A stretch of DNA of 64,000 bases from Macrostomum lignano. Lineage: Eukaryota. The DNA lies in contig NIVC01001510.1 of the NCBI GenBank assembly GCA_002269645.1, forward strand, positions 62,001 through 126,000, in the 5' to 3' direction. The notes beneath the pieces were generated by a model. It saw only the letters and a list, made by a program, of their open reading frames with translations. It was not told where the DNA came from and made no database searches. How positions within the stretch are numbered: the first letter of the stretch is position 1; each line of letters opens with the position of its first letter. Both the position numbers and the translations under genes were made by a program. Positions 36,946 through 64,000 of this stretch are shown one piece after another.

Positions 36946-38024
36946 CTTGGGAAAGATCGCAGAGTCACTGCGCCGCAATCTGAAACGAACTTATTAAAAA
37001 TGAGAATGAGTTGTCCAGAGACCACGGCTGACTCATCCTTCAAACAGGATCATCCCACACACGCTGACGCCCTCAGCTCCTACCCCGCCCCTATCGCACT
37101 GTAGCCGGCCTGATTAAACTGCCCAATTGATCGAGACAGATTTCCTGTCACAGCAGCCTACAGCTCTCGCTATCTCGGGGTTGGCAATGGCGCCACTAGC
37201 TATGGGTCTTAGAGTGTAGGGCTCCGCAAGGCGAAGCAAGCAAGGATTTAGAAGGGGAAGGCTTAAAAGAATGCGACCAGTTCGCGTCGGGGGATATAGG
37301 GGAGGAGTAGAAGAGGGTAAAAAAGTTAATCCCCAAATGCTTCGGGGAACTGCAGTGGGGTGAACTCAGTTCGACCGTCATCGTTCGCCCTGGATCTGTC
37401 CCTAGGGGGACTGGGCCCGGACTCTGGTCTCCATGTAATTAGCTCTGCCAGCTAGTTCTGCCCTACTCTTGCGTACGTATACTCACCCTAGCCTCAGCTA
37501 TTGCATCAGCTCCATGCATTACTTATAGTATTATAAGCATTGCTATCTGGCTAGCTATCTCTCTATAAAAGAATGCGCCAAGTTGCACACGGGACCCCCC
37601 CCCCCTGCTGACCTCTTGCTTCGCTTAGCGTGAATAGACAGAGTGAGAGAGAGAGAGGAGATAGAGAGAGCGGACTGTCTGCCTCATGGGAGGCGTTATA
37701 GTGTAGTCACAGCCTTCAGCTCTAAGAACTGTTCTACACACTAACGATCAGAACCGCTAGGTTTGGTTTAATCGTACTTTTGAGTAAAAATCCATTTAAT
37801 TCAGAGGTGAAGTCAATTTTATCTTTGTATTAAAATGTTTTACTACTCAAAAAAGGAAGAAGCTCTCGTTTTAAGTAGCCTATATAGGCGCCTATACCTA
37901 ATAGCCAAGTGAGCTAGATAATTTACCTAACACTCTACTTATGGTAACACATTTAGTCTATGTGAAGTTGGGTAGCTTTAAAACTACATGGATCAGTTTT
38001 GATGGCTACCGACGTTGTAGAGTG

Positions 38025-38812
38025 GCTGGGATCAGTGCAGAGAGGCTGGGATCAGTGCAGAGAGGCTGGGATCAGTACAGAGATGCTGGGATCAGTGCAG
38101 AGAGGCTGGGATCAGTGCAGAGAGGCTGGGATCAGTGCAGAGATGCTGGGATCAGTGCAGAGAGGCTGGGATCAGTGCAGAGGCTGGGATCAGTGCAGAG
38201 ATGCTGGGATCAGTGCAGAAAGGCTGGGATCAGTGCAGAGATGCTGGGATCAGTGCAGAGAGGCTGGGATCAGTGCAGAGAGGCTGGGATCAATGCAGAG
38301 AGGCTGGGATCAATGCAGAGAGGCTGGGATCAGTGCAGAGAGGCTGGGATCAATGCAGAGAGGCTGGGATCAGTGCAGAGAGGCTGGGATCAGTGCAGAG
38401 AGGCTGGGATCAGTGCAGAGAGGCTGGGATCAGTGCAGAGAGGCTGGGATCAGTGCAGAGAGGCTGGGATCAGTGCAGAGAGGCTGGGATCAGTGCAGAG
38501 AGGCTGGGATCAATGCAGAGATGCTGAGATCAGTGCAGAGATGCTGGGATCAGTGCAGAGAGGCTGGGATCAGTGCAGAGAGGCTGGGATCAGTGCAGAG
38601 AGGCTGGGATCAGTGCAGAGAGGCTGGGATCAGTGCAGAGAGGCTGGGATCAGTGCAGAGAGGCTGGGATCAGTGCAGAGAGGCTGGGATCAGTGCAGAG
38701 ATGCTGGGATCAGTGCAGAGAGGCTGGGATCAATGCAGAGAGGCTGGGATCAGTGCAGAGAGGCTGGGATCAGTGCAGAGAGGCTGGGATCAATGCAGAG
38801 ATGCTGGGATCA
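38025..38812. repeat. 20-nt minisatellite (aggctgggatcagtgcagag)
   Basis: Directly visible. It explains the 277/291-aa spurious ORFs. Confidence 0.95.
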
Positions 38813-40857: not shown

Positions 40858-43800
40858 TCAGCCGGATCCATGATGCCGGTGCACCAGCGGGTAGCACACT
40901 TCGGCCGCCTCCACCAGGGCCAATCGCTGATGCCCGGTGGCGCCATCAGCGGCGGCGCCGGCGGAGGCGTCAGACGAGGCGGAGTCGTGCCGGCAGGCCA
41001 ACGGGCCGCACTGCACGGAGCTGTCATTGGAGTGGTGATACTGCACATCCGGCGGCTCGATCGTCACCTGAGAGGCGAAGAGCGAAGCACTCTAATTTAA
41101 CCAGTCATAGGCGGGTGCCTCTCTCTCTCTCTCTCCGCTCTGCACTAAGGCAATACGCCGCTTAATTAAATATGCAGCCCTACTCTGTTTTACAATAATT
41201 CGGGGGGTGGGGGGACCGGCGTAGAAAAACCCGATCCAAACGTGTTTTTTCATTTCCTCGCGAAAAATTAAAGCGCTCGAGTTTCTCTCTTAGCACCGGC
41301 GTCATTAGGTAGATTGAAATTTCAGAATTCTACCCGACATTCTACCTTGTACTTTGAGCTATTCCGCCCAATCACTACACCGGTCTTTCTGTTGAACAGC
41401 CCGCCCTGTAACAGTCGGTACTTCAGGTCCTTTCTGTAGCAGGCACATTGCTGCAACACACTTAAGTTCACTGTGCTCTTCTGCAACAGTCTGATTTGTG
41501 TGCAACAGTCTCATTCGTGTGCAACAGTCTCATTTGTGTGCAACAGTCTGATTTGTGTGCAACAGTCTGATGTGCAACAGTCTCATCCAAGTGCAACAGT
41601 CTCATCCAAGTGCAACAGTCTCATCCAAGTGCAACAGTCTCATCCAAGTGCAACAGTCTCATCCAAGTGCAACAGTCTCATCCAAGTGCAACAGTCTCAT
41701 CCAAGTGCAACAGTCTCATCCGCGTACCAGTCAAGCCAGTCTCATGACACTCGCATTTAAACACTGTGCTTTTTAAAAAATCAACTGATTCTTTCGCAGC
41801 AGATCAGCAGAACCGCATCCAGTAGTTTTCTATATCCTGTTTTCATTTCTCTGTCAGCCCACCTGGTTTTCTCTCTGCTATTATTCTCTATCTATCTAGT
41901 CTCTAATCTTCGCGCCAATCTGCACAGCCGCGACTCTTCAGGTTGCACAATCAGCGATCTATTTGCGCATGCCCCCCTCCCGACGATGGCGTGCTTCAGC
42001 GCGAGGCCTTATTATAAAGCAGTCACCCCCTATTTAATATGACTAATTGGTAGCGCCAGCTGCTCAGAATCCACCCATCCGGCGACTCGAAATCTGCGGC
42101 TCAATTTCTGCTCAGTTAACCAGCCGGAGCTCCGACAGATCCAGCACAGCTGCCTGCCTTAGAATAATCCCAAGCCCGCCGCATCATCATCAGCCAGCCG
42201 CATATAATAGGATTTTTTCGGTGAGTAGCAAGCCGAATGAACTCAGCATAGTGTACTCGAACCCTTCCCGCCACGCTAACTAGCTCTTTTACCTTACTCA
42301 GTGCAGGCTGGGCGTGGATAGCTCGATCACGGAATACTAGATGGAGAAAATCTGGTGCTGATTAAGGCTAAATACAGAAAGTCAGGGAGACTTTGTCATG
42401 CGTACGCATCCGTGAGCAACAGTCTCATCCGTGAGCAACAGTCTGATCCATGAGCAACAGTCTGATTTATGAGCAACAGTCTGATCCATGAGCGACAGTC
42501 TGATTCATGAGCAACAGTCTGATCCATGAGCAACAGTCTGATCCATGAGCAACAGTCTGATTCATGAGCAACAGTCTGATCCATGAGCAACAGTCTGATC
42601 CATGAGCAACAGTCTGATCCATGAGCAACAGTCTGATCCATGAGCAACAGTCTGATCCATGAGCAACAGTCTGATCCATGAGCAACAGTCTGATCCATGA
42701 GCAACAGTCTGATTCATGAGCAACAGTCTGATCCATGAGCAACAGTCTGATCCATGAGCAACAGTCTGATCCATGAGCAACAGTCTGATCCATGAGCAAC
42801 AGTCTGATCCATGAGCAACAGTCTGATCCATGAGCAACAGTCTGATTCATGAGCAACAGTCTGATCCATGAGCAAGTCTGATCCATGAGCAACAGTCTGA
42901 TCCATGAGCAACAGTCTGATTCATGAGCAACAGTCTGATCCATGAGCAACAGTCTGATCCATGAGCAACAGTCTGATCCATAGCAACATTCTGATCCATG
43001 AGCAACAGTCTGATTCATGAGCACAGTCTGATCCATGAGCACAGTCTGATCCATGAGCGACAGTCTGATTCATGAGCAACATTCTGATCCATGAGCAACA
43101 GTCTGATCCAAAGCAACAGTCTGATCCATGAGCAACAGTCTGATCCATGAGCAACAGTCTGATCCATGAGCAACAGTCTGATCCATAGCAACAGTCTGAT
43201 CCGTGTGCAAAAAAACTGAAGAAACTTTGAGACCATGCTAACAACAACAGCTCATTGAAAGTAACTTTCTTATTGATTGATTTGTTCACAATTTGATTCG
43301 CCAGAAATAGCCCTATAAAAAAGATAACAAAGAATTAAGTAAGGCCTAAATATTCACAAGAATCAGCCAATCCAGATGGTTCGTCATTAAATTTTCATAG
43401 ACAGCAGCCGGATTTATTAAAATTAGAGGGGTGGTTTTTCGCTTCGTCACCTTCCCCATCATTCCAGATGGCTTGTTTTAGAGGTCCACGGAGACAGAGG
43501 GAGAGAGAGGGAGAGAGGAGGAAAACGGGCGAAGGCGCTCATCACGCACAGCAAGCGAGCCGAGCTGCATCTGAAAAAATATATATCTTTGCCATAGGTA
43601 TAATTTCCATGCCTGAGCCGCCCCCAGATTCCATACTTCAGTGTCTGCATTTCTCGTTTGCTCAATGCTTCCTCATCGCTGCTCAATCAGAATTGAAAAA
43701 GAGTTCCTCTCCCCTAGCAACTAACCCGGACAGCCGAAAGCAGAGTCTGCAGCATTTCAATCCCGGCTAGGGAGGTAAATTGAAAAAAATCCTGTGGGTT

Positions 43801-46800
43801 GAGGGAAATCCCATGCCTAAAATTGCAATTTCAATTTGCAGCACAGCTCAGGAGCTTTGGGCGTGGCTAGTTGGTCGGAGGCTGAATAAACTAACCAACC
43901 CAACAGCCGCTAAAAACTACTTGACTTCAGGTCAAAAGCAATTTATCCGAATCACATGTATGATTAAAAGCTACTTTCGATACATGTCGGGACAGGTTAC
44001 TGGTAGCTCAAAGTGCAAAACCGAATAAACCGTCTGTAATGCTCCTTTCTATAAAAAGAAATAATAATTGTGCACACCTGCGCTAATGCTGGCACCCATT
44101 TTACAGCTGGGTGAACTGAAGCAATGCGGAGCTAAGTTCGGCTCAAGGATACAAATTGTTCCGAATGGGCCGAGAATCGAACCCCCGACCTCCCAGTCAT
44201 GAGTTCGACGCTCTGACCACTAAGCTACAACCCTCTTATGCATCTTTTCGATACATATAGGGATAAGGCCTAAGCAGCTTAAAGCGTATAACCAAAATAG
44301 GTTCTTACTGTAAAAGTATTTTTCGATACATATCGGGAGAGTCGCATAATATCATGAAGCATACATTTAGCGCTAAAATAAGCCCCTCACTGGAATGCAA
44401 CTTTCGATACATATCGGGATGCAAAACTGCAAAACTGACCTGCACGCCACCCTCGTCCGAGTGGCTGTTAGAAGGCGAAGCTTCAGCCGAGTCCCTGCCG
44501 CCGCCGCCGCCCTGAATCAGGAGCGTCGGCACTTGGACGCTGCCCGCAACGGACGCGGCAGCGGAGGCCGACACGCCGCTGGGCACGGCGGCGCCGGCCG
44601 GGTTGGCAGCCGCGTGAGAGTGGTGCGAGTGCTCAGCCAGCAGGTGGGCATCGAGCAGCGAGGCCTGGGAGCCGCGGTGAATGTGCAGGCCGCAGGCCTT
44701 CAGAATGTCCAGCTTGCACAGCGGACAGGAGCGCTGGTCCAGCAGCCACGGATCGATGCAGGATTTGTGATAGAAATGCCTGGGTGGGTTGGGGGTGGAG
44801 TATTGTTAGGGTTCTTGTCGCTTCCGCATATAGATCGGCCTTTCAAAATCTCATTGCCAACAGATCTCAAAATCTCATTACCAACAGATCCCAAAATCTC
44901 ATTGCCAACAGATCTCAAAATCTCATTGCCAACAGATCTCAAAATCTCATTGCCAACAGATCTCAAAATCTCATTGCCAACAGATCTCAAAATCTCATTG
45001 CCAACAGATCTCAAAATCTCATTGCCAACAGATCTCAAAATCTCATTGCCAACAGATCTCAAAATCTCATTGCCAACAGATCTCAAAATCTCATTGCCAA
45101 CAGATCTCAAAATCTCATTGCCAACAGATCTCAAAATCTCATTGCCAACAGATCTCAAAATCTCATTGCCAACAGATCTCAAAATCTCATTGCCAACAGA
45201 TCTCAAAATCTCATTGCCAACAGATCTCAAAATCTCATTGCCAACAGATCTCAAAATCTCAAAGACAATCCAGCTCACCTGCAGGGCAGGATTCGAACCG
45301 ACTCGCCGCACCTGTAGGGCTCAATGCAAACGGCGCACTGATCCCCAATCCAGTCGAAATCCTGGCAAAGCGAAGCATTTTTGGAGGTGCGAGGTATTTT
45401 TAAAAACAAAATTCAAGTCTTTAAAGGTAGCGCGCAGGGATCCCCGATTAAGGCTCAGAACATCAAGGAATTCCAACAATTTGTCGACTTTCCCGTCAAA
45501 AGAAAATTCCCCATAATTCCTAGTAGTCCGATTGAAAAAATTCGAACCTCGCACCGCACTATCTGTTTAGCTCTGTTTGAGCAGATCCGCGTAATTAAAA
45601 GCCGGAATAGCGGCTCAGCAGCCGCAGCCTCTCTCTGCCCCGCCTTTCAGCTGCTGTTGCGCACGAATGAAGGATTACAGTACGAGTATAAGGACAGAAC
45701 AAGAAGGAAGAAGTCCGCCTCTCCTCTCAGAGTCCCAGAAATGCGAGCCGCTGCAGATTCACATAGGCCTTCTCTCTCTCCATCTACTCCTAGCTCTCTC
45801 ATAAAGATAAGCCTCTAGTTAATTAAAGCATAGAAAGGCGTTAGTTGCAGAATAATGCGCCCGTGCCTGTCCCTGCTCATCCAAGCTCACTCTGCCACTC
45901 TCGTCAAGCTTAAGCCCTTCAGCTGCCCGACCTTTTCAGTTGGCAAAAAAGTCCGCCGATGAGATGAAAGACAACAGGAGATGAAGCCGAATTTCCTGTA
46001 CCTGAGCGCAAGCAGAAAATCTCCAAGTCTTTCTGCTTTTTTTCTTCTTCTAGACGAAAATATGATGAAAAAATCAATGAAAATTGGGGTGGCTTAGAAG
46101 ATTACGGACTAACGGACGGTTTATCTTTAGCAGGACTTATTAACCCGTGTTCCAAAATAATTTCTTTCGTGTGCTCTTTTAGAAGCCAAAGAACTGAAGC
46201 TGCTTTTGCTCGATTTTAATTAAAAGAAACATAAATAATGAGGCCGTTTGAACAGGAGAAATTAAAGCCTATAAAAATCTCCAGGCTCTTAATAAGATTT
46301 ATTTATCGATCTATCTATCGTATACCTTCAAAAGAGTTTGTTTGCGCTACAAAGTTACTCAATCAACTTTGAGACTAGCACCCTTGTTTTCTCTGTAAAA
46401 AGCGCTCTACGCTACATATTGGCAAGACTGTCAATATTGAAGATACTTATATGCTACGGGCTGCTGCATAAAATCACTCAGAAAATATTGCCTTATAATT
46501 TTTTAGCGCTACATATCGGCAAGTAAGCAAAATGAAAAATATTGATAGCATTAAGCTACAAAACTCACCTTGTCGCCAGTCTTGAGCACCTTGACGGGGA
46601 TTTTTGTCAGCGCCTTCTTCGCCGCGGTACCCAGCCGACGCTGAAATTCGGGGAGGAGGGAGAGTGCGAGCCGGGGGTCAATGGGGGGGGGGTCGACGCT
46701 GAAATGCCAGAAACAACAATTTATAAGAAAAAAGGGAAGCTATGTACTCAATCGTATTGATATATCTTTTCCTCTTGAGGCAGAATAAACTATTATCCAG

Positions 46801-48513
46801 TTGAGCGAAATACACATGCACAATGTACCGTAGTAATATACGGTCATTGACTTGAAACAGCCTGGAATTCCAATCTGTGGACGGTGAGGAGCAGTTATGG
46901 GAATCATTGGCATCCCATGGAATACCTGCCTGAGAACCGAAAATTTAATGAATGATAACCCTGTGTAAGTGTGCGCCTGTGTACATATCCGTGTGGGTGT
47001 TCAGGGGCCAGCGGATCGGCCTCTTCGCTGGTTGCGAGTCAGCTGTTGCAGTGACTTGTGGCAGTCCCCAAAGCCCTGCGAACTGACTGACTGACTGACT
47101 GGCTGACTGACTGACTGGCTGACTGACTGACTGACTGACTGGCTGACTGACTGACTGACTGACTGACTGACTGACTGACTGGCTGTCTGACTGACTGACT
47201 GACTGGCTGACTGACTGGCTGGCTGACGACTGACTGGCTGACTGACTGACTGACTGACTGACTGACTGGCTGACTGACTGACTGGCTGACTGACTGACTG
47301 ACTGACTGGCTGACTGGCTGGCTGACTGACTAACTGACTGACTGAGTGACTGACTGACTGGCTGACTGACTGACTGACTGGCTGACTGACTGACTGGCTG
47401 GCTGACTGACTGGCTGACTGACTGACTGACTGAGTGACTGACTGACTGGCTGACTGACTGACTGACTGAGTGACTGGCTAACTAACTAACTAATTTTGAG
47501 ATGACCCTATCCGAGCACAGTGCAAACAATAGGAATTTGCATCGCAGAAGCCGTGCTTAGAGGACAGAACAACGCCTATCCGCAGCCTAGCAACTAACCG
47601 ACAGCCGCTCCTTGGCGTGCAGATAGCGGAACCGTTGCACATAATAGAAGATCAGCCAGGACAGGCTGATCACCATCAGCAGGATGAAGGACACGGACAC
47701 GAACAGCACGGAGGTCTTATTGATGAGGCCATCCGGCGCTACAGATCTGAACGAATAGCCAATTTTGCAGCTCCGATTGGATCTCTGCAGCTCGTCGAGC
47801 AGGCGGGCGGCCAGGTCGGCCGGCTCGTACAGGACAACCGGAAGCTGCGGGCGGCGCGGCGGCGGCGGTGGCGGCGGGTGCGCCTGGCTGATGATGGCGC
47901 CTGCCGGGGTGGCCGCCGGCCGAGCAGCGGTTGAGGAGGCAGCGGCATCCTCTTCGTAGGACCTGGCGCTGCCGGCCGGCGCGTTAAACACCAACAGCAG
48001 GCCGAGGTCGGGCAGCAGGCGGCGGACGGCTTGGATAGAAGCAACCAGGCCGCAGGCTTTCACATCGGCGAGGGCAACTGTCGGCTCGGCGGCGGCAGCG
48101 GCTGAGGATGCAACAGTCGGCGAGATCAGACGGGCCCGCGTGCAGGGCGGCGACACGGCCACGGCCAGCAGGGCGGCGGCATCGCTAGACAGGATGTGCG
48201 TCTCCGCCTGCTTCCTGCGCAGCCAGCTGAGCCGGTCCGAGCCCGCCGGCTGCACTGCCGGCGACGAGGTGCGCGGCGGCGGATCGACGTCAAAGACGTG
48301 CGGCTTCGCCAGGGCTTCGCAGTCGAATGACAGCCGGAACTCGTCCTGCAGCTGCCGGGTGCGCTGGTAGTGCGCCGACATGAACTCCGGCCTCTGGGAG
48401 ACGTCGCCACGGCCCGAATGCGAGTCGGCGCCAGATGGTGCGGTCAGGACTGCGAGCAGCAGATGGAGAAGTAGCAGTGGCCGCCAAATGTTGGAGCAAC
48501 TTGACGAGTGCAT
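40858..48513 (-). CDS. gol: Goliath/RNF130/RNF150-family PA-TM-RING-H2 E3 ubiquitin ligase, ~539 aa, 5 exons
   Basis: Exons (minus) 48513-47599, 46640-46569, 45361-45279, 44779-44440, 41067-40858, all phase-compatible. Signal peptide; the family signature [34 protein letters not shown]; AKKALTKIP; RING-H2 [42 protein letters not shown]. The symbol is family-level. Confidence 0.92.
41478..41720. repeat. Intronic 19-20-nt minisatellite (gtgcaacagtctcatccaa)
   Basis: Directly visible. Confidence 0.9.
42410..43205. repeat. Intronic 19-20-nt minisatellite (gagcaacagtctgatccat)
   Basis: Directly visible. It shares its core with the 41478-41720 array. Confidence 0.95.
44082..44232 (-). mobile_element. 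tRNA-derived SINE with CORE/Meta-like domain (same family as 28541-28715)
   Basis: The reverse complement reads GGTTGTAGCTTAGTGGTCAGAGCG...GGGGGTTCGATTCTCGG...tgtatccttgagc...ttgcttcagttcacccagctgtaaaatgggtgccagca. Confidence 0.82.
44845..45260. repeat. Intronic 24-nt minisatellite (caaaatctcattgccaacagatct), nearly perfect
   Basis: Directly visible. It fills the intron that splits the RING domain. Confidence 0.96.
47085..47490. repeat. (GACT)n/(GGCT) tetranucleotide microsatellite
   Basis: Directly visible, intron 1 of the goliath-like gene. Confidence 0.95.
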
Positions 48514-51729: not shown

Positions 51730-54700
51730 CTACTCCTGGCTGGACTCGGCCAAGTCAGACTCGGCAGCTTCGAGCAGCTCGGACAGCGAGTCGCGCAGGC
51801 CCTCCGGACTGCAGGCGCTGTTGCTAGGGGAGCCAGCGATGCGGATTAGGCGGCTAAGCCGGATCAGCTGATCTACAGATGCCGGCGAATATGAGGCCGC
51901 GTTCGGGTGGCAGATGCAGCGGAAGGGCCGCTGCCAGGACTCCAGGCAGAGGGCGCGGGCCTGCGGACACGGGTTGGTTGGTGCGCGGCTGTTCGGCAAG
52001 AGTTCGAATTTTACTCGTATGTTTCAGGGCTTATGCACTTCGCCTCTTATGCGATTCTCGAGGGGAGACGGGCGTCAAAGGCGATTCTCAAGGGGGAGAC
52101 GGGCATCAAGGCGATTCTCAAGGGGGAGACGGGCGTCAAAGGCGATTATCAAGGGGGAGACGGGCGTCAAAGGCGATTTTCAAGGGGGAGACGGGCGTCA
52201 AAGGCGATTCTCAAGGCACTGTGAGTGTCAAAGGCGATTCTCAAGGCACTGTGAGTGTCAGAGGCGATTCTCAAGGCACTGTGAGTGTCAGAGGCGATTC
52301 TCAAGGCACTGTGAGTGTCAGAGGCGATTCTCAAGGTGGCATGCATGTCAAACTAAGTATTCGTACAAAAGATAAGGAGCAAATGAGACAAGTAGGCAAG
52401 CCAGAGAGCGCCAGGTAATAAAAAAGCAGACAGACGCAGACAGCTCAGCTCACGTGCTCGGGGAAGCGGCGGCCGTGCCAAGGCAGCAGATTGTGACAGG
52501 GGAACTGAAACGGCGGCAGGCAGCAGATGTCGTCCATTCGGCACAGGGTGAAATAGGCCGGCCCGGCCGGGCAGCAGAGATTGGCCAGGTCGGCTGCGGA
52601 CAGGGAGCGCAGAGCGGCCAGGGCTCTGGCGCAGTCGCGCGGCCGATCAAAGCGCAGAACGCAATAGCCGAGATTGTTAGCGCCATTGGCCAAACTGGCT
52701 GGCGCAGTTGGAGCGAAAACGCTGCGAATCTGCAAGTTGAGGGAGAGAGCATGCGGGGAGCACGGCAATCGACTGGTTAGAGTTTAGGAATTGGGGTTAA
52801 AGATGGGGTTTAGGATAAGGTTTAGGATGGGGTTTAGGTAAGGTTTAGGATGGGGTTTAGGTAAGGTTTAGGATGGGGTTTAGGTAAGGTTTAGGATGGG
52901 GTTTAGGTAAGGTTTAGGATGGGGTTAGGGTAAGGTTTAGGATGGGGTTTAGGTAAGGTTTAGGATGGGGTTTAGGTAAGGTTAAAGATGGGGTTTAGGA
53001 TAAGGTTTAGGATGGGGTTTAGGTAAGGTTTAGGATGGGGTTTAGGTAAGGTTTAGGATGGCGTTTAGGTAAGGTTTAGGATCGGGTTTAGGTAAGGTTT
53101 AGGATGGCGTTTAGGTAAGGTTTAGGATGGGGTTTAGGAACTGGGGTGGAACTGGGGTTTAAGATGGGGTTTAGGATGAGGTTTAGGATGGGGTTTAGGA
53201 TGGTTTTAAGATGTGGTTTAAGATGGGGTTTGTGATAACGTTTAGGATGGTTCAGGTAGGGTTTAGGATGGGGTTCAGGAACTGGGGTTTAAGATGGGGT
53301 TTAGGATAGAGTTTAGGATAAAGTTTAGGATGGGGTTTCGGATGGGATTTAGGTAGGGTTTAGAAATTGGGTTTGAAGAATTAGGGTTACTTATTGCTTA
53401 ACTACAATAGTGGAGCCATCCAAGGGATGTCAATGGGGTCAGCTGCTCTCCTCTAGAGAAAACTGGGGGGGGGTCATGCGGCAATAAAACAAAACGAAAA
53501 CAAAAGCAGAAAGCATCTCACCAGCGGGAACCGATCCAGAAATCTGGCTGCCACCTCGGCAGTGGCCAATTGGCGGTGCAGATTCCAGGCCAGGATGAAC
53601 TGGCAGCGAGTCGCGCAACCGTCTGGCACGGGGCAGAACGGCGCCAGAGTTGGCCGCAGGTCGGCCAGTCGAGTCGGTTTGCCGCACCATTGGCGAAGGC
53701 GCAGCTCAGACTGGCCGGGCAGCTCCTTGGAAAGGCGGCTGGCGGCGGACTCGGCCACCTTGGCAGACATGGAGACTGGCAGGCGCAGGACGGCCAGCTG
53801 GCAGTTCAAAGAGGCGTGCCCGGCAATGTACAGGTTGTCGGCCACTCGGCTAGGGAAAGCGCGTCGAATAGCCACGGCTAATTCCGTCCGGTCGGCTTCA
53901 GTAGGCAAGCCGGTCAGCTGCCAGCAGCGGAGCGGACGGCTCGGCGGCAGCAGGCGCCACTGCTCCGCGGACCGGTCGAATGTAGTGGCGTCTTCCTCCG
54001 TGCGAGAGCAACTCGAAGTTCTGCTGCTGCTGCTGTTGTTGTTGGCATCGTCAACTTCGCCATTGTTCAGCGCCAGCAGCAGGGCGGCGTTGCCGTGCCG
54101 GTTGACCGGGTGCAGCCGCGATGTCGCCGCAGCCCATGCCGATGTTTTTGCACTCGATGCCGAAGAGAGCCAGGCGGCCGTGACGTGAATTGGCACCAGC
54201 TCTTCGCTTTCCAACATCAGATCCGACAGCAGCCTGCGAATGTTACAGGCCGGTTGGGTAAGTTAGTAATTGGAGGGTTAGAGAAGATAGATAGTCGAAA
54301 TCTTCATCAAATACAGCTATATAGATCTCTATGGGGGTACAAGAGAGACGGTCATGCGGGGGTAGAAGAGACGGTCATGCGGGAGGGGGGGGTAGAAGAG
54401 ACGATCATGCAGGGGGGGGGTAAAAGAGACGGTCATGCGAGGGGTAGGAGAGTCGGTCATGCAGGGGGGGGTAGAAGAGACGGTCATGCGGGAGGGGGGT
54501 AGAAGAGACGGTCATGCAGGGGGGGGGTAGAAGAGACGGTCATGCAGGGGGTAGAAGAGACGGTCATGCAGGGGGGGTAGAAGAGACGGTCATGCAGGGG
54601 GGGGTAGAAGAGACGGTCATGCAGGGGGGGGGGGTAGAAGAGACGGTCATGCAGGGGGGGAGGTAGAAGAGACGGTCAAGCAGGGGGGTAGAAGAGACGG

Positions 54701-57700
54701 TCATGCAGGGGGGGTAGAAGAGACGGTCAAGCAGGGGGGTAGAAGAGACGGTCATGCAGGGGGGGGGGGTAGAAGAGACGGTCATGCAGGGGGGGGGGTA
54801 GAAGAGACGGTCATGCAGGGGGGGGGTAGAAGAGACGGTCATGCAGGGGGGGGGGGTAGAAGAGACGGTCATGCAGGGGGGTAGAAGAGACGGTCAAGCA
54901 GGGGGGTAGAAGAGACGGTCATGCAGGGGAGGTAGAAGAGACGGTCATGCAGGGGGGGGGTAGAAGAGACGGTCATGCAGGGGGGGGGGTAGAAGAGACG
55001 GTCATGCAGGGGGTAGAAGAGACGGTCATGCAGGGGGGGGGTAGAAGAGACGGTCATGCAGGGGGGGGGTAGAAGAGACGGTCATGCGGGGGTAGAAGAG
55101 ACGGTCATGCAGGGGGGGGTAGAAGAGAGGGTTCATACGGCGGTCTCTTACCTGACCGTCTGGATGGGGTCGCCGTCAGCCGGCAGTCGCATTCGCAGCG
55201 TGAAGGCCAGCCAGTCGAACATGCCGCCGGCGGGTGCGGACGGCATGGCGTCCGGATGGCAGGGGCAGGTAAACGGAGCCGGCGAATAGGGCGGCGAGTC
55301 CAGTAGGAAGTCGAGCGGATTTTCGCTGTTCTGATTGGCGTTGATCAGCCAAGGCAGAAGATTGTGGCAGGGAAAGGTGAACATTGGCGGCACGTGGCAG
55401 GTTTCCTGGCGAGGGGGGGGGGGCGAAGAGGGTTGCTTTTGCTAACGATACTACGAGTAGATTAGGCTTACATGTATTATAAAGTCCAAGCCAGTGTGGT
55501 TTCCAGGAATATTATCACTTTAGTGGTGTGGAGCAATATTTTCACTTCAAAAATAGTGATCCACCTAGCAACCGCTACGAGTCAATTACCGAACAAGTAA
55601 CCGTTTCCGGTCAGTGCCAATGACCTACCTAGCAACCGTTTCCGGTCAGTGCCAATGACCTACCTAGCAACCGTTTCCGGTCAGTGCCAATGACCTACCT
55701 AGCAACCGTTTCCGGTCAGTGCCAATGACCTACCTAGCAACCGTTTCCGGTCAGTGCCAATGACCTACCTAGCAACTGTTTCCGGTCAGTGCCAATGACC
55801 TACCTAGCAACCGTTTTCGGTCAGTGCCAATGACCTACCTAGCAACTATTTCCGGTCAATTCTAATGACCCACCTAGCAACCGCTTCCGGTCAATTCTAA
55901 TGACCCACCTAGCAACCGTTTCCGGTCAGTGCCAATGACCTACCTAGCAGCCGTTTCCGGTCAGTGCCAATGACCTACCTAGCAACCGTTTCCGGTCAAT
56001 TCTAATGACCTACCTAGCAACCGTTTCCGGTCAGTGCCAATGACCTACCTAGCAACCGTTTCCGGTCAATTCTAATGATCCACCTAGCAACCGTTTCCGG
56101 TCAATTCTAATGATCCACCTAGCAATCGTTTCCGGTCAATTCTAATGATCCACCTAGCAACCGTTTCCGGTCAATTCTAATGACCAAATTTCCATTAAGC
56201 CTCACCAGCAAAGCGGCATAGCTAACTCGGATGAGTCCGGAGCAGAAAATGGCCATCAGCTGCTGCTGGGTGGCCGATCTCATCCGCTCCATAGCGTGAG
56301 CGCAATCGGCCGGCCGATTAAATCTGGCCACAGCGAAGCCGCAGTTGCGCAGCTGGCCGCTGCTGGCGGGGACTGGCCGGGGACAGTAGAAGCTGCGCGC
56401 CATAGGCAGGAATCGGCGCATTCTGTGCACTATTAAATTGGCGCTTAGATCGCTGGGCAGGTTCCAGATTAGTAGAAACACCTGCGGATTGATTGATTGA
56501 TTTTTAAATTTTATTTATGAATTTACAACACTATAAAATTTCTCATATAGTTACTAGACTAGGAAATTAGACTAGTTTAAAAATATCCCCTCCATATCCC
56601 AACAGCGTAGTTAATACATATAACTTCATATAGCTGCTTAATATCTATCCCAAAGACCAATTCCTCTGTATCATATCTACAACATAACTCAACAATATCC
56701 TGTCTGCACAATTCCACAATAGCTCATCCAAAGAATTCCACAGTATCCTATTTACATACTTTTACAATATAGATTCAACCTGCAACTCAAAAATTCAGTA
56801 AACTCTCTCCTAACCCAAACTTTAACCCACACCTTAACCCAAACCCAAATCAAAACCCTAACCTTAACCCAAACTCTAACCTAAACCCTAAACTCTAACC
56901 TAAACCCAAACTCTAACCCAAACCCAAACCCAAACCTTAACCCAAACCCAAACCTTAACCCAAACCCAAACCCAAACCCAAACCCGAATCCAAACCCAAA
57001 CCTTAACCCAAACCCAAACCTTAACCCAAACCCAAACCCAAACCCAAACCCAAACCCGAACCCAAACCCAAACCTTAACCCAAACCCAAACCCTAACCCA
57101 AACCCAAACCCGAACCCAAACCCAAACCTTAACCCAAACCCAAACCCAAACCCTAACCCAAACCTTAACCCAAACCCAAACCCAAACCCTAACCCAAACC
57201 CAAACCCTAACCCAAACCCGAACCCAAACCCAAACCCACCGGATCGGCAGCCGTCTCCTTTTGCAACAAGACAAAACTGTCGCCAAAGCTATCCGGCATG
57301 CGATTGGCCAGACTACTGGCACCGACACTGTCGGGCAGGACAACACTGGCAGTCACTGGCCGCCGCTCGGAATCCTGCAGGCCCTGCCGTTGGAACATGC
57401 GAACCAGATCGTCAGCCGCTGATTCTATGGAACTGGCCGGCACATCGGGTTTAAAAGTGCATTGTACAGCTTTGCCGCAGTCCGCTGGCCCGGGCGGATA
57501 GAATGAATAGCCGGTGAGAGCCAGGCCGGCCAGCTGGTGCATAGTGAGGTCCGTTAGCTGCACGGGATCGGCGCTACGTCTCAGGCCGGTGATGCGCAGA
57601 TAGGCCTGCTGTATGGAAATGATTGAAACAATTCGTGCTTATGGGTGCTTGACTTTTTAGAGGTTGGAGGCGATTTTCGGAAAGAAGAGTAGAGTAGAGC

Positions 57701-59996
57701 CACAAGGAAGAGATGAAAGCTACGGGAGGGAAGAGACAAAACCTCTCAGGGAAGGAAAAAATGAAACTCAAAGAAGGGGAGAGATGAAACCCCAAGGAGC
57801 GGAGAGATGAAACCCCAAGGTAGGGAGAGATGAAACCCCAAGGAGCGGAGAGATGAAACCCCAAGCAGGGGAGAGATGAAACCCCAAGGATGGGAAGATG
57901 AAACCCCAAGGAGCGGAGAGATGAAACCCCAAGGAGCGGAGAGATGAAACCCCAAGGAGCGGAGAGATGAAACCCCAAGGAGGGGAGAGATGAAACCCCA
58001 AGGATGGGGAGATGAAACCCCAAGGAGGGGAGAGATGAAACGCACAAGGAAGGAGAGGAGATGAAACCCCAAGGAGGGGAGAGATGAAACCCCAAGGAGG
58101 GGAGAGATGAAACCCCAAGAGGCGTAGAGATGAAACCCCAAGGAGCGGAGAGATGAAACCCCAAGGAAAGGAGAGATGAAACCCCAAGGATGGGGAGATG
58201 AAACCCCAAGGAGGGGAGAGATGAAACCCCAAGGAGCGGAGAGATGAAACCCCAAGGAGCGGAGAGATGAAACCCCAAGGAGGGGAGAGATGAAACCCCA
58301 AGGAGGGGAGAGATGAAACCCCAAGGAGCGGAGAGATGAAACCCCAAGGAGCGGAGAGATGAAACCCCAAGGAGGGGAGAGATGAAACCCCAAGGAGGGG
58401 AGAGATGAAACCCCAAGGAGGGGAGAGATGAAACCCCAAGGAGGGGAGAGATGAAACCCCAAGGATGGGGAGATGAAACCCCAAGGATGGGGAGATGAAA
58501 CCCCAAGGAGGGGAGAGATGAAACCCCAAGGAGGGGAGAGATGAAACCCCAAGGAGCGGAGAGATGAAACCCCAAGGAGGGGAGAGATGAAACCCCAAGG
58601 AGCGGAGAGATGAAACCCCAAGGAGGGGAGAGATGAAACCCCAAGGATGGGGAGATGAAACCCCAAGGATGGGGAGATGAAACCCCAAGGAGGGGAGAGA
58701 TGAAACCCCAAGGAGCGGAGAGATGAAACCCCAAGGAGCGGAGAGATGAAACCCCAAGGAGGGGAGAGATGAAACCCCAAGGAGCGGAGAGATGAAACCC
58801 CAAGGAGCGGAGAGATGAAACCCCAAAGAGGGGAGATGAAACCCCAAGGAAGGGGGAGATGAAACCCCAAGGAGCGGAGAGATGAAACCCCAAGGAGCGG
58901 AGAGATGAAACCCCAAGGAGCGGAGAGATGAAACCCCAAGGAGGGGAGAGATGAAACCCCAAGGAGGGGAGAGATGAAACCCCAAGGAGGGGAGAGATGA
59001 AACCCCAAGGAGGGGAGAGATGAAACCCCAAGGAGGGGAGAGATGAAACGCACAAGGAAGGAGAAGAGATGAAACACCAAGGATTAAGGAAGGGAGAGAT
59101 GTAACCCTTAGGAGGGGATGAGACCCAAGGAGGGGAGATGAAACCTTCGGGATGCTTCCGGAGGTTACCTTTCCCGGCTGCACCTGCCATAGAGGTTGAT
59201 TAGCATCTATCGATAGGCGAGGCCGCTTGCTCTCTGACTCGGCCTCGCCGACAGGTTCTGGCGCAAAAGCTTCGTCATTGGCGTCGCCAATGTTGTCGTC
59301 AATAGGGCGCCGCCGTCGCTGCCCATTCAGCCGACTGTCTAATCGAAGCGCGGCCGACACCGGCACTGGCCACAGGTTGTGAGTTCGAGCCCCGGCATTG
59401 GCTAGCCGGCTAGTCAGCTTAGCCCGATCGGTGCCCGGCTTCAGCAGAGCCAGCGCGGTGGCCGGCGCTTCAACAGCAGCTTCGTCGCTCATGGCGTCCG
59501 CTGGCGCGTCGGTTAACTGCGTAGGCGCCGGCAGTGGCGCAAAATCAACAAGCTGATCGGCTGGCCAACAGTCTTCGCCTAGTCGCATAGCGTCCGGATC
59601 GTTCCATTCGGCCAGCATCAGGCTGACATCCGACAGGGCTTCGGCCGGCTGCTGCTGATTGTCACCAATGCTGAAATAGAGCGGACAGGCGCCCGGTCCG
59701 AGCTGGTGTAGCACAGCCGGCCACTGGTCTGTTGGCACGGCATCGAATAGCAGTACCGTGCGATCGCCCAGGCTGGCCGAGTACCTCACGTACTGCCTAT
59801 GATTGGCATCGGAGGCAACTGCCTTGCTACTCTTGGCATCCGGGATATCGGGAGGAAGCAGCACGAAATCAGATAGGAGTAGCAGCTGTTCAGAGTCGCT
59901 ACTGCTATTGCTGTTGGAGTCCACAGTTGGAGCAGGCTGGGCTTGAGTGCTATCCGACTCATCCGCCTTCTTATTGTTATTGCTGTCGGCCAGCAT
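51730..59996 (-). CDS. ~981-aa, 7-exon protein with two tandem [RRM-like, RRM-like, Cys/His motif] modules; unknown function
   Basis: Exons (minus) 59996-59169, 57608-57240, 56481-56206, 55405-55152, 54233-53522, 52729-52454, 51960-51730, all GT..AG and phase-compatible (2946 nt). RNP2/RNP1-like pairs: FLLIWNLP...[10 protein letters not shown] and FILAWNL...[10 protein letters not shown]. Each is followed by [17 protein letters not shown]...PFxCxCHP. Confidence 0.85.
52060..52335. repeat. Intronic 30-31-nt minisatellite with two unit types (aaggcgattctcaagg + gggagacgggcgtca or cactgtgagtgtcag)
   Basis: Directly visible. Confidence 0.9.
52790..53390. repeat. Intronic telomere-like degenerate repeat (ggtttaggatgg / ggtttaggtaa), G-rich on + strand
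   Basis: Directly visible. Confidence 0.9.
54340..55130. repeat. Intronic minisatellite tagaagagacggtcatgca + variable G-run (5-11 G)
   Basis: Directly visible. Confidence 0.95.
55600..56185. repeat. Intronic 35-nt minisatellite (agcaaccgtttccggtcagtgccaatgacctacct)
   Basis: Directly visible; no spacers. Confidence 0.95.
56810..57238. repeat. Intronic telomere-like hexamer tract (aaccca/aaccct/aacctt), C-rich on + strand
   Basis: Directly visible. It begins at the splice donor (GTGGGT TTGGGT... on the minus strand). Confidence 0.92.
57770..59150. repeat. Intronic 22-23-nt minisatellite (ggagagatgaaaccccaaggagc)
   Basis: Directly visible. It explains the 538-aa and 444-aa ORFs and the false C-terminal extension of the 742-aa ORF. 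Confidence 0.96.
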
Positions 59997-60234
59997 TAGG
60001 GTCCGATTGATATTTTGTTATATTAAATCTCTGTATTCGAAAGTTTGTCAGCGAAGGAGGGCCACTGTCTGTCGCTATGCGATCTTTGAGCTGGAATAGA
60101 CGGTCAGCATGATATCAAGCACCCAGCTCAACTCGAAACTTGTATCGTCAAAGGTCATACACACGGCTAGGCTATTGCAATTTTATGCCTCTGAGAAATT
60201 TCCAGCTCAAAATTTTGTTTCGTGTAGCTTCAAC

Positions 60235-60770
60235 AATGTGCAGATTATATTGTATGGGGAATCTACATTATAATGTTCAGATTATATCGTATGGGGAATC
60301 TACATTATAATGTGCAGATTCCGTGTGGAGTCTATACGAGCGTAATGTGCAGTTTCTATAATGTGCAGATTCTATCGTGTACAGATTCCACAATGTACAG
60401 ATTCTATAATGTTCGGATTCCAAGATATAATGTGCAGGTTCTACACAACGACAACTGAATTATACGATACTCGAGTGTTGCGTCCTACCACTTAAGTTGT
60501 CCTTGGTTCTACAATGTGAGATTATATTTTATATAATATTCAGATTCTACAATGTGCAGATTCTATAATATTCAGATGCTAAAATTTGCAGACTATATAA
60601 TATTCGGATTCTACAATGATCACATTCTATAATGGTCAGATTCCAAGATACAATGTGCAGATTCTATAATGGTCAGATTCCAAGATACAATGTGCAGATT
60701 CTATAATGGTCAGATTCCAAGATACAATGTGCAGATTCTATAATGGTCAGATTCCAAGATACAATGTGCA
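60235..60770. repeat. Degenerate tandem repeat (cagattctataatg / cagattccaagatacaatgtg)
   Basis: Directly visible. Confidence 0.8.
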
Positions 60771-61740
60771 GATTATTATATATTGTACTTGTAAAGATTC
60801 TACGATGCTGAGATTGTATCTATTATATATTTTAGTTGGCGCAGAATGTAGAAGTATATTGTGTATAGTCTCTATAGCTGATGCAAGACTTAAGCTAACC
60901 GAGTTAAGAGCTTCAAAGCCCTGCTGCTAACTAGCAAAGTCTTTTTTTGTTAGTCTTTCACATACGAAAACTTAAAAACACATTAAAATAAAAAAGAACG
61001 CTATATGAAAACAATGAACTCGAACACATTGCTAGCATAATATTACGAAAATTCCAACTATATATAACGCAAACATTCATTTAACAACAGTTGCCTGCAT
61101 GTATTGTGAACGCAAAGATGACAGCGTTACAATATCTGATAAAGCAAAATATGATGTTACTACAATTACAATACGCAATGCATAATCATACAATACAAAA
61201 ATATGATGCAACAAATACACTAGCCAGCGCATTTCGACTCGTACGAGTATTTAAAGCTTGCACAATATGTTGAAAGATTAAAGTGAACTTAGCGCTAAAC
61301 TTTCGTAAAGAAAACTTTCATTAATTCACATTGTCCTCCTCGCTATTATTACTTGTGTTTACTAAGCAAATTGAAAGCTAGCGGATAGTTAAACAATCAA
61401 AATAATGAATAGTTTACGAGTAAGAGCAATATGGAGTATAACAATATGCGTTAAACATTCAGTGCTTCAGTAGTATATAATTTGAAACGGAATTCGTATG
61501 AATGTTTACTGATTGGCAAAAATATCGCCTTTGGCAACTCTATTCTCGTCGAATCGGACGCGCACATTTCTATCTCTACCAGTAGGAAGTTCCCTGGCTA
61601 TTTTTAGTCTGAAACACAGATACTAAAATAACTAGATGGGCCACTCAGACATATATACTTAGTAAAACAGCTGTCTACTTTCAGTTAAGTAGCAAATAAG
61701 AATACATGAGCTATTTTATAAAAATAAAGGCAGCTAAGAT

Positions 61741-62450
61741 GACTTTGATAAGTTAAGAAGCCCAACCTTGCAGGCGTAAACAACTATCTAATTGGTTCAG
61801 CAATAATGTACGTTGGCCAGTCCACTGAAATGTACATAGCAGCTTTAGGCTGGAATATTGAAAGGCAATAAAAATTAGGGCGGGGCACATAGATAAAGTA
61901 TACATAGATTCCACCCCTGCCCCCGCGGAGTGTCTAAATTGTGACCATCACTTTATTCACTGCGCTCCTATTGGCTGGGCCACGCTATGCACATTGAGTC
62001 CACGTGTGTACATTCCCCCAACTCCGGAACACTTGCGTGTCGACTTCATTCTTGCTAAACTGTTGAAACTGGTAAGACATCCTTTCGTTCCGCGCATTAA
62101 AGTTATAAAGCTTTCTTGTGTGGAAGGGGTGAGGGAATGAAATCGAAGGGGTTGAAAGGAAGGCTTTCGCGCCAGCCAATGAGAGCACGGTGAGTTTTAT
62201 GGTGGTCAAAGTTTGGACACGAGCGTGTGTACATTCTGGGCAGGGGTGGAATCTATGTATACTTTATCTATGGCGGGGCAGGGGGGGGGGCTTTGATAAG
62301 TTTAGAAGCCCAAGCTTGCAGGTGTAAACAACTTGCTAATTGGATCAGAAATAATGTACATTTAACATTTGCCAGTCCACTGAAATGTGCATAGCAGCTT
62401 TAGGCCGGAATTCCGAGAAAGGCAATAACAATTGAGGCGGGGCGAGGCGG
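61741..62450. repeat. ~150-bp diverged direct repeat (61741-61887 and 62291-62450) flanking the MITE
   Basis: ctttgataagtt.agaagcccaa.cttgcagg.gtaaacaact...gccagtccactgaaatgt.catagcagctttaggc...aaaggcaataa occurs twice. Confidence 0.8.
61888..62272. mobile_element. 385-bp MITE with perfect 35-bp TIRs and 8-bp TSD (hAT-like)
   Basis: Left TIR catagataaagtatacatagattccacccctgccc (61888-61922); right TIR is its exact reverse complement (62238-62272). The TSD gcggggca lies at 61880-61887 and 62273-62280. An 8-bp TSD is characteristic of the hAT (and P) superfamilies. Confidence 0.9.
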
Positions 62451-63058
62451 GGGTAGTGTGGAAAGGCGCGGTTGGAGGGTTGAAGCCTGGGGGTAAGGGC
62501 CAATAAATTAGCCTTTGGCTTACTACTACTGAACTGAAAGTAGCTTACGCGCAAATGTGCTGAGTGGCTCATCAAGTTATTCTAGAATCTGTGATCTGAG
62601 ATTATTTAACAAGCCAACCAAGGCACCGCTTTAAGAAGATATTCAACCATTCCTTCAAGAAATTAAGTTTCCCAGTTCAATAAAATATCAGAAATGCCAA
62701 GCGCTATAGTCGCCTATGTGACTACGAGTTCTCTTGTCCATTGTAGGTCCAACAGGCTTTCAATAACTACGTACAATACGTAAAACATTTTTACATAGTG
62801 ATATTTCTACACGATTCGCTGGTGTTCTGGAATTTTACATTTAGGGCGCAGGAAAAAAATTGCTTCAGAGGGAATTCTTCTCTTGGTAGTAGTTAAAAGC
62901 TATGAAAAAACGGTTTAGTTCAAGCAGATATTTGTGAAACAATATCGAGTTGACAAGTCTTGCATTCTTTTTTAGCGGTTGTATTTACCGTTTTATCATC
63001 TTACTCGTACCAGTTTATTAGAAGCGCGTTTAAAAAACGAATGAAAATAGAAATGCCG

Positions 63059-64000
63059 TCAACGAAACATGACCGAATCCAGATAGGAGCGCAGATTAGC
63101 GCGCACAGTGTCAACCGGGTAGGCGGCCCTGGCCTGCTGCACTAGTTCGGCGAACTGCACAAATTTTTGGCTATCCGGCGCCAGCTCCTCGCATACCGGG
63201 TGACAGGGACAGGCGAATGGCGATCTGTCAATGACGCACCGTTCAGTGCTCGGTTCAACTGAGGCTACCCAGGAAATCAGATTATGACAGGGGAAACTGA
63301 ACGGCGGCACGTGGCAAATCTCGCGCATCTGGGCTGGTATAGCGCGTAATTTAGTTTGCCAGGCTTTATTGCCACGAAGTTGTCGATTTTCTCGAGCAAA
63401 TGTTCGAACCTTGTCTCTGGCGCCTAGACAGCGGCCGAAAGCATCCTCGGCATCGCATTGAAAGCGGATGACGCAATAGCCGCAGTTAAGCTCGGGCTGC
63501 AACGGGTCGCGTGGCACGTGGACGCTGCGCAGCCGAGGAATCATTTCGCGTAGGGAGCCGATCAGCTGGGATAGTGGCAGTTGAGTCGGCAGATTCCAAA
63601 TTAATAAGAAAGGCGCCTGTTGTCTGGTAGGCCAGAACAGAAACCTGTCTGGCAGGCTTGAAGCAAACTCGTGACACGTGACTGTACTGTATTCGCGTAG
63701 GCACAACGAACCGACAACGGAATCATGAGCCGACTTGTCTGTTGGTTGAGCGCTAGTCTCTGCTTGAGTAGTCGCAGAGGCAGGTAGCTTTTCGGCTTCA
63801 ATCGCCGCCTCTACGCTTGGATTATGGGGCTTATTAGTTGAACCGGACTCAACCGTTCGAACAACAGTGTCTAGAAGAGCTTCGGCTACCTCTCGAACTA
63901 TGATGTCGACTGAAGCCGACTCATTAGTGTCAGACGGTGTTTCACTAGTAGTCTCGATTTTTCCCTCAACACCTTCGATAGCTTTGTCAGTAGCTGCTAC
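63059..64000 (-). CDS. Partial (5'-truncated by the window) paralog with one [RRM-like, Cys/His motif] module, intronless over 942 nt
   Basis: The frame is open from 64000 to the stop at 63059-63061: ...[50 protein letters not shown]...EICHVPPFSFPCHNLISW...RSPFACPCHP... Confidence 0.85.
   Translation of the reverse strand, partial: VAATDKAIEGVEGKIETTSETPSDTNESASVDIIVREVAEALLDTVVRTVESGSTNKPHNPSVEAAIEAEKLPASATTQAETSAQPTDKSAHDSVVGSLCLREYSTVTCHEFASSLPDRFLFWPTRQQAPFLLIWNLPTQLPLSQLIGSLREMIPRLRSVHVPRDPLQPELNCGYCVIRFQCDAEDAFGRCLGARDKVRTFARENRQLRGNKAWQTKLRAIPAQMREICHVPPFSFPCHNLISWVASVEPSTERCVIDRSPFACPCHPVCEELAPDSQKFVQFAELVQQARAAYPVDTVRANLRSYLDSVMFR

Follow-up and report, generated by a model that had tools for sequence, protein, structure and literature searches.

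Proteins in which an RNA recognition motif (RRM) is directly followed by a short Cys/His element are known from several systems. They include RBM5 with its RRM1-RanBP2 zinc finger (ZnF; 7pcv), ZCRB1 and RBM4 with an RRM and a CCHC knuckle, CPEB with an RRM and a ZZ domain, and U2AF35 with the order CCCH-U2AF homology motif (UHM)-CCCH. A comparable arrangement was studied here in a stretch of 64,000 nucleotides (nt) from Macrostomum lignano, namely positions 62,001 to 126,000 of contig NIVC01001510.1 (assembly GCA_002269645.1), which is called the window below. At one end of the window, two adjacent genes, A and B, encode three copies of a module of ~190 amino acids (aa). We consider it reasonably likely that these genes are two adjacent members of a small lineage-restricted family, and that the module joins a divergent RRM to a family-specific extension, which probably binds zinc, while the module may bind RNA or a partner in a ribonucleoprotein. 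To our knowledge, the H-x(19-38)-C-x-C-H of the module, together with a Cys of its RRM, fits no RanBP2, CCHC, CCCH, or ZZ pattern.

Ten Modules in Seven Genes

The three copies in the window are paralogous and share 30-40% identity (within-window tblastn E = 3e-21, 1e-18, and 1e-12), and the same search found no fourth copy elsewhere in the window. The original prediction, made from the window alone, had placed three modules here, and all of them were present, on the minus strand and on an exon chain that stays in frame. The motifs that it quoted and their spacers (x24, x19, and x16) agreed exactly with the spliced sequence, with the exception of DPIQTVRRLL, which reads DPIQTVRLL. For copy 2, the UniRef entry A0A1I8HYM5 (P0001) is near-identical to gene A across the region.

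A profile of the three copies was run with HMMER against 1.84 billion representative proteins (E <= 1e-3) and gave 10 matches, 8 of which were M. lignano proteins. The two bacterial matches (P0008 and P0009) were rejected as spurious; they are surface-repeat proteins with many weak matches of ~9 bits to a repeated Thr/Cys-rich domain. No relative outside M. lignano was found among these representatives, for a profile built from three sequences and with the reservation that orthologues of congeners could hide in the 50% identity clusters. Paralogues included, the family comprised seven genes with ten modules, all from M. lignano: two modules each in gene A, P0004 (1072 aa), and P0007 (1024 aa), and one each in gene B, P0005/P0013 (788 aa), P0006, and P0010 (673 aa). 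The family is small and, as had been proposed, apparently lineage-restricted, judged by the reach of the profile.

The genome has two or three near-identical copies of every family gene, as the neopolyploidy of M. lignano would lead one to expect. The counterpart of the window locus on contig NIVC01002217 (our locus L003) runs collinear to the window, with 97-98.5% identity, and is therefore a duplicate or homeologous copy. The database names of the family members are automatic and inconsistent, namely "hypothetical protein," "RRM domain-containing," "RRM_2 domain-containing," "FZ domain-containing," and "FIST domain-containing." The names "FZ," "FIST," and "RNase H domain-containing" are artefacts of chimeric gene models. 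The family had been described as unrecognized. This description suits the Cys/His tail, which matches no described family, but several of the proteins already stand in UniProt/GenBank as uncharacterized or under the automatic name "RRM domain-containing protein."

A Predicted Divergent RRM Core

The fold of the module was predicted with AlphaFold (AF2) on an alignment of the ten modules, which gave a model with a predicted local distance difference test (pLDDT) of 73.6 and a predicted template modeling (TM) score (pTM) of 0.70; it superseded a run on the three window copies alone, which was unusable (pLDDT 45.5). Residues are numbered by copy 3, with F1 at codon 63637. The predicted core (residues 9-103, pLDDT 74-88) consists of b1 9-14, a1 22-32, b2 36-40, b3 54-59, a2 66-87, and b4 98-103, that is, in the beta-alpha-beta-beta-alpha-beta order of RRMs. 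When the model was compared with the PDB by Foldseek, almost all of the top 50 matches were RRMs (E ~1e-3, probability ~1.0, target TM 0.5-0.73, ~95 residues covered), including U2AF65 RRM2, RNPS1, eIF4H, HuR, Rna15, and Fox-1; the RRM of RBM5 RRM1-ZnF was found at rank 45. Against viral predicted structures, Foldseek returned giant-virus RRMs only, with weak scores.

The family profile matched PDB sequences weakly (E 0.15-2), and all these matches except the top one were RRMs. In the matches shown residue by residue, the ribonucleoprotein motifs RNP2 and RNP1 were aligned in register. RNP2 corresponds to FLLIWNL on beta1, and RNP1 to G-[YF]-x-V-x-R-F on beta3. The predicted strand and helix order, the Foldseek matches, and the register of the profile matches all agree with the RRM-like character proposed for the N-terminal half of the module. 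At the level of the predicted fold, the first ~100 residues are a highly divergent RRM.

A Cys/His Extension

In the AF2 model the core is followed by a hairpin (107-110/113-116), a helix (117-125), a loop of low confidence, the CxCH motif (143-146), and two long helices (156-172 and 175-191; pLDDT 84-91). Eight columns are invariant in the ten modules, which were compared at 18-33% identity to copy 3: F59, C70, P116, H118, W123, C143, C145, and H146. Cys and His account for five of them (hypergeometric p ~1e-4). C70 stands at the start of the RRM helix alpha2, and H118 opens the short helix in the motif P-x-H-N-L-L-x-W. The remaining three belong to an invariant P-F-x-C-x-C-H-P, and the spacer from the His to CxCH varies from 14 to 33 residues.

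The original prediction had counted six invariant Cys/His positions and a seventh that alternates between His and Cys. This is true of the three window copies, where the seventh reads H/C/H, but across the ten modules the Cys of "ETC" (7 of 10) and that of "PCH" (6 of 10) are subfamily-specific, and the H/C position is not conserved. An eighth Cys, uncounted there, is invariant in the window copies; it follows RNP1 in a "DC" of the RRM-like part.

No Pfam zinc-finger family matched the C-terminal halves of the ten modules at E <= 10, and a search of these halves against PDB sequences gave nothing beyond Spondin-1 (E = 0.27). The view that the Cys/His part comes from no described family is supported by both searches. 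SWIM-, THAP-, and CCHC-type fingers were considered and rejected, on the absence of a Pfam zinc-finger match and on an H...CxCH spacing unlike theirs. From its conservation pattern, the Cys/His tail probably binds zinc, through a set of ligands other than the one first proposed.

Pre-Module Units and Overall Architecture

Each module of gene A is preceded by a more degenerate unit. The first of these aligns with the matching units of six paralogues, and a conserved F-V-x-[LV] motif lies in the linker right before module copy 1. Against the PDB, the pre-module units gave weak RRM matches only (RBMS1, E = 0.8; TUT1, E = 1.5). The proposal of a degenerate RRM-like unit before the module was therefore right in that the unit is a conserved feature of the family, but its RRM nature is weakly indicated. 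Homology to the RRM of the module was not established, since hhalign of pre-module against module gave E = 0.011 with a probability of 3.9%.

The family proteins are large, and in their repeated units the module is well conserved and the pre-module poorly so. The N-termini of gene B (taken from NIVC01002217) and of P0004 carry a putative C-x2-C-x12-H-x5-H finger, which resembles those of the U1 type, and zf-met/zf-C2H2_jaz match both proteins weakly. In gene B the spacing is seen in YCELCSVGMMTREGYEVHVLGKRHQ, where zf-met reaches 16.9 bits (cut-off 21.2) and zf-C2H2_jaz 15.8 bits (cut-off 22.6), both over the full model length. Gene A is without the finger. An N-terminal region can be aligned across the family, and its second half matches the MIP6 RRM (E = 0.05). 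The order in gene B and P0004 is finger, N-terminal region, segments rich in Pro/Gln (PQ) or Arg/Ser (RS), and a pre-module plus module unit, of which gene B has one and P0004 two. Judged by domain content, a role in nuclear RNA processing or regulation is suggested by the U1-like finger, the RS regions, and the presence of several RRM-like domains.

How the Module May Work

We propose the following scheme. The extension of ~90 residues would form a beta-hairpin, a short helix starting from the invariant His, a variable loop, the CxCH, and two long helices. One Zn2+ would be held by four of the five invariant Cys/His residues, that is, by the Cys of alpha2, the His of H-N, and those of C-x-C-H, and this site would staple the extension onto the body of the RRM. 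Because beta4 ends and alpha2 begins at one and the same edge of an RRM, the topology makes a site linking C70 with the extension geometrically plausible. The module would bind RNA or a partner in a ribonucleoprotein, and the proteins may act in nuclear RNA processing or regulation, because they combine a U1-like finger with RS-rich regions. A stronger form of this proposal, which we put forward tentatively and would not count on, is that the module is a "zinc-stapled" RRM of a previously undescribed kind, in which the alpha2 Cys and H...CxCH together make up a metal site that locks a hairpin-helix appendage to the domain, in Macrostomum-specific regulators of RNA processing that originated and diversified within the lineage.

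Several results weigh against this scheme. All ten modules in the AF2 alignment are paralogues from one species, and the model is at its least confident in the Cys/His loop (pLDDT 47-62; CxCH ~60). No Pfam model was over threshold in any member; the best was RRM_1, which reached 11.5-12.3 bits in some members only (cut-off 20.7; E 0.16-0.28), and the other RRM family models in Pfam did not match the family members. Two positions that are aromatic in canonical RRMs, position 5 of RNP1 and position 2 of RNP2, are aliphatic in essentially all modules, and RNA binding via the canonical sheet surface is therefore uncertain. In favor of the scheme, the three modules differ between the window and its duplicate by 4 synonymous changes and, except for the final residue, 0 non-synonymous ones, and the sequence outside the modules by 10 synonymous and 11 non-synonymous changes; this pattern is suggestive of constraint on the modules but comprises very few substitutions and is not significant. 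A literature search by gene identifiers, which covered one supplement in part, found no data on expression, localization, or phenotype.

The aliphatic positions also bear on another explanation, that the module is a pseudo-RRM for protein-protein contacts, either UHM-like or self-occluded, with the extension lying over the beta-sheet, the Cys/His residues purely structural, and the proteins acting as scaffolds. Both positions are non-aromatic in 10 of 10 modules, a Trp occupies RNP2 position 4, normally small or basic, in five modules, and the two confident C-terminal helices must pack somewhere. On the other hand, nine of the ten modules have Tyr or Phe at RNP1 position 3, and the same face of the sheet bears a near-invariant Arg; the U1-like finger and the RS-rich regions are typical of RNA-processing factors, and nothing indicates where the helices dock. 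We hold this explanation to be unlikely, although it deserves to be kept in mind.

Alternatively, the Cys/His residues may not be metal ligands at all, but serve in core packing, redox chemistry, or a disulfide, or be the remnant of another fold such as a deaminase-like H-x-E...P-C-x-x-C half-site. The low confidence of the model at this place, the variable spacer between the His and CxCH, and the failure of every known zinc-finger profile to match are in keeping with this idea, and the predicted order (a His-started helix, a strand, and a Cys pair before a helix) is loosely similar to that of deaminases. However, the share of Cys and His among the invariant columns is hard to explain without ligation. 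The position of the catalytic Glu is held by Leu or Phe (H-N-[LF]), the Cys pair is CxC and not CxxC, and no deaminase appeared in the Pfam, PDB-sequence, or top Foldseek matches. With RS regions and no signal peptide, the proteins are unlikely to form disulfides. We thus judge this alternative to be rather improbable.

Finally, a transposable-element origin, with modules taken from a protein such as the open reading frame (ORF) 1 protein (ORF1p) of a non-LTR retrotransposon, in which an RRM and zinc knuckles are possible, and a family made up of dispersed element copies, can practically be dismissed. LINE-1 ORF1p was the best PDB sequence match of the module profile (E = 0.15), and two UniProt models of the family include Gag/protease or RNase H segments. 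However, the L1 match lies in the coiled coil and not in the RRM and is not significant, and the fusions result from wrongly joined gene models. The family has few copies, which are 18-40% identical and form no near-identical swarms; they lie in ordinary gene neighborhoods with different neighbors and no adjacent reverse transcriptase/endonuclease ORF. Spliceosomal introns are present in some members, and a long host-like N-terminal region in every one.

Gene Structures and Neighborhood

The features of the window are listed in table 1. In gene A, exons 1 and 2 complete the 980-aa protein, and exons 3 to 7 are linked by AG/GT boundaries in an unbroken frame. The window holds the 3' end of gene B, and its start lies beyond the edge. 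In NIVC01002217 the full gene is a separate, intronless gene of 1292 aa upstream of the gene A counterpart, and its 3' end is the ORF that carries copy 3 in the window. Genes B and A stand in tandem and in the same orientation in both contigs. That they are two adjacent genes, as first proposed, agrees with the transcript-based annotation of NIVC01002217, in which they are separate.

Table 1.— Features of the 64,000-nt window (positions of the window; exons and codons in the order of the gene)
Feature	Position	Strand	Remark
Gene A	59996-51730	minus	7 exons, 980 aa, two modules; start ATG at 59996, stop 51732-51730
Gene A, exons 1 to 7	59996-59169, 57605-57240, 56481-56206, 55405-55152, 54233-53522, 52729-52454, 51960-51730	minus	splice model
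Gene B, 3' end	63059-64000	minus	one open frame from window edge (64000) to stop at 63059
Module copy 1	56481-56206, 55405-55152	minus	gene A; continues ~50 nt further into exon 5
Copy 1, candidate ligand codons	C 56304, H 55366, C 55267, C 55261, H 55258	minus	
Module copy 2	53611-53522, 52729-52454, 51960-51730	minus	gene A
Copy 2, candidate ligand codons	C 52633, H 52495, C 51918, C 51912, H 51909	minus	
Module copy 3	63637-63062	minus	gene B; ends ...SVMFR
Copy 3, candidate ligand codons	C70 63430, H118 63286, C143 63211, C145 63205, H146 63202	minus	
Pre-module unit 1 and linker	57240-57605	minus	AYLRITGL...VTASVV; possible degenerate RRM
Pre-module unit 2	53687-53929	minus	gene A; RCWQLTGLP...NCQLAVLRL...LRLRQW
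Gene A, intron arrays 1 to 6	57761-59083, 56812-57238, 55599-56185, 54344-55132, 52795-53363, 52051-52336		periods 23, 12/18, 35, 28, 23, 30/31 bp
Minisatellites, examples	14273-14874, 26883-28060, 29162-29949, 38019-38812, 42408-43210		
(ACTG)n array	47082-47491		

A protein search showed that BOX15_Mlig000637g3 (P0022; GenBank, 933 aa) is 97% identical to the spliced gene A protein, and gene A is its counterpart (duplicate or homeologue) on sequence grounds. The GenBank models of M. lignano are based on a genome-guided assembly of RNA-seq data (PMC5730564). This transcript-derived model matches five of the six exon joins of gene A exactly, and at the join of exons 1 and 2 its acceptor (57608) lies 3 nt upstream of ours (57605) and yields one extra Gln; the exon chain of gene A is thereby borne out except for this acceptor. 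Exon 2 has a tandem acceptor, CAG|CAG (NAGNAG), of which the UniProt model uses 57605 and the GenBank model 57608. The UniProt fragment P0003 takes an earlier donor in exon 1, as well as an earlier donor in exon 2 by which the conserved F-V-x-L linker is skipped.

In exon 6, P0022 has a 1-nt deletion (TGTGCCGA -> TGTG-CGA; L003 ~17527-17528, corresponding to window ~52541), which shifts the frame of the second module in the deposited BOX15_Mlig000637g3 protein. The exon sequence on either side is identical, so the deletion could be either an artefact of assembly or a lesion of very recent origin. Another entry, P0002 (UniProt, 2098 aa), combines genes B and A with a Gag/protease segment in a single protein and misreads the frame in part of exon 3; it is a mis-joined gene model, and the transcript-based annotation separates the two genes. 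P0018 (2109 aa), like P0002, is a chimeric prediction, in which family members are joined to Gag/protease or RNase H segments of retroelements. Downstream, gene A is followed by a gene for a RING-finger protein (zf-RING_2; window ~41400-48500, minus strand). This gene was placed by collinearity with L003 21610-28228, and it also spans minisatellite arrays.

Expansion of the family by tandem duplication had been suggested. The locus of genes A and B fits this suggestion, but no second family copy was found within 10 kb at the loci of four other paralogues (P0004, P0007, P0010, and P0013). Gene B, P0004, and P0007 are intronless, and the introns of gene A, P0010, and P0013 lie at non-homologous positions, a pattern suggestive of introns having been gained independently, or lost through retroposition in the members without them.

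All six introns of gene A are largely filled by minisatellites, a different one in each, with 5-58 copies. The array of intron 2 has the consensus AACCCAAACCCTAACCCA and reads on the gene strand as a degenerate, interstitial TTAGGG/TTTGGG telomere-like repeat. Positions 1-51000 of the window are dense in distinct minisatellites of 16-59 bp, each 0.3-1.2 kb long. As such repeats occur throughout the window, the intron arrays reflect a genome-wide habit.

Significance and Comparison with Known Systems

The family is a lineage-restricted variant of a known fold, encoded by uncharacterized genes, and its Cys/His extension is undescribed in the libraries searched. Highly divergent lineage-specific RRM families are common, and the result is therefore mainly of use for annotation: seven M. 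lignano genes that were "hypothetical" or inconsistently auto-named are now grouped and provided with a domain map. It has no bearing on a long-standing open question and holds no major surprise. If the zinc-stapled extension is true, it would be one more elaboration of the very common RRM scaffold, and the genes would offer a small set of lineage-restricted candidate RNA regulators in M. lignano, a model in stem-cell and germline work.

Compared with canonical RRMs (PF00076; U2AF65 RRM2 5w0h, HuR RRM1 4fxv, and eIF4H 2dng), the module has the same predicted topology and RNP2- and RNP1-like motifs on beta1 and beta3. It differs from them in its sub-threshold score (<=12.3 bits against 20.7), in the aliphatic residues at two of the three canonical aromatic positions, and in having, besides a conserved extension, an invariant Cys where alpha2 begins.

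A resemblance to the group of hnRNP R/Q, A1CF, RBM46/47, and DND1 had been drawn from the N-x-G-[FY] that begins RNP1 in some modules. This affinity was not supported. hnRNP Q (6kor) was among the weak PDB profile matches, in register, at E = 0.17, on a par with MIP6, PPIL4, PABP1, and SRSF2; the Asn of N-x-G is present in 5 of 10 modules, and nothing in the family points to the dsRBD-like (double-stranded RNA-binding domain-like) or acidic domains of that group. The N-x-G-Y start also recalls RRM3 of Mei2, and the gene A fragment P0003 bears the UniRef auto-name "RRM_2 domain-containing protein." A Mei2-type RRM (RRM_2, PF04059) was rejected, as current Pfam gave no match at E <= 10 for P0003 or for the other members tested.

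In overall composition there is a likeness to proteins of the Matrin-3, RBM20, and ZNF638 type, which we take to have a similar list of parts, namely a U1-like C2H2 finger, a segment rich in RS, and RRMs whose RNP motifs are degenerate. No sequence homology to them was detected, their domain order is different, and they are without the CxCH extension. The resemblance would thus be an architectural one.

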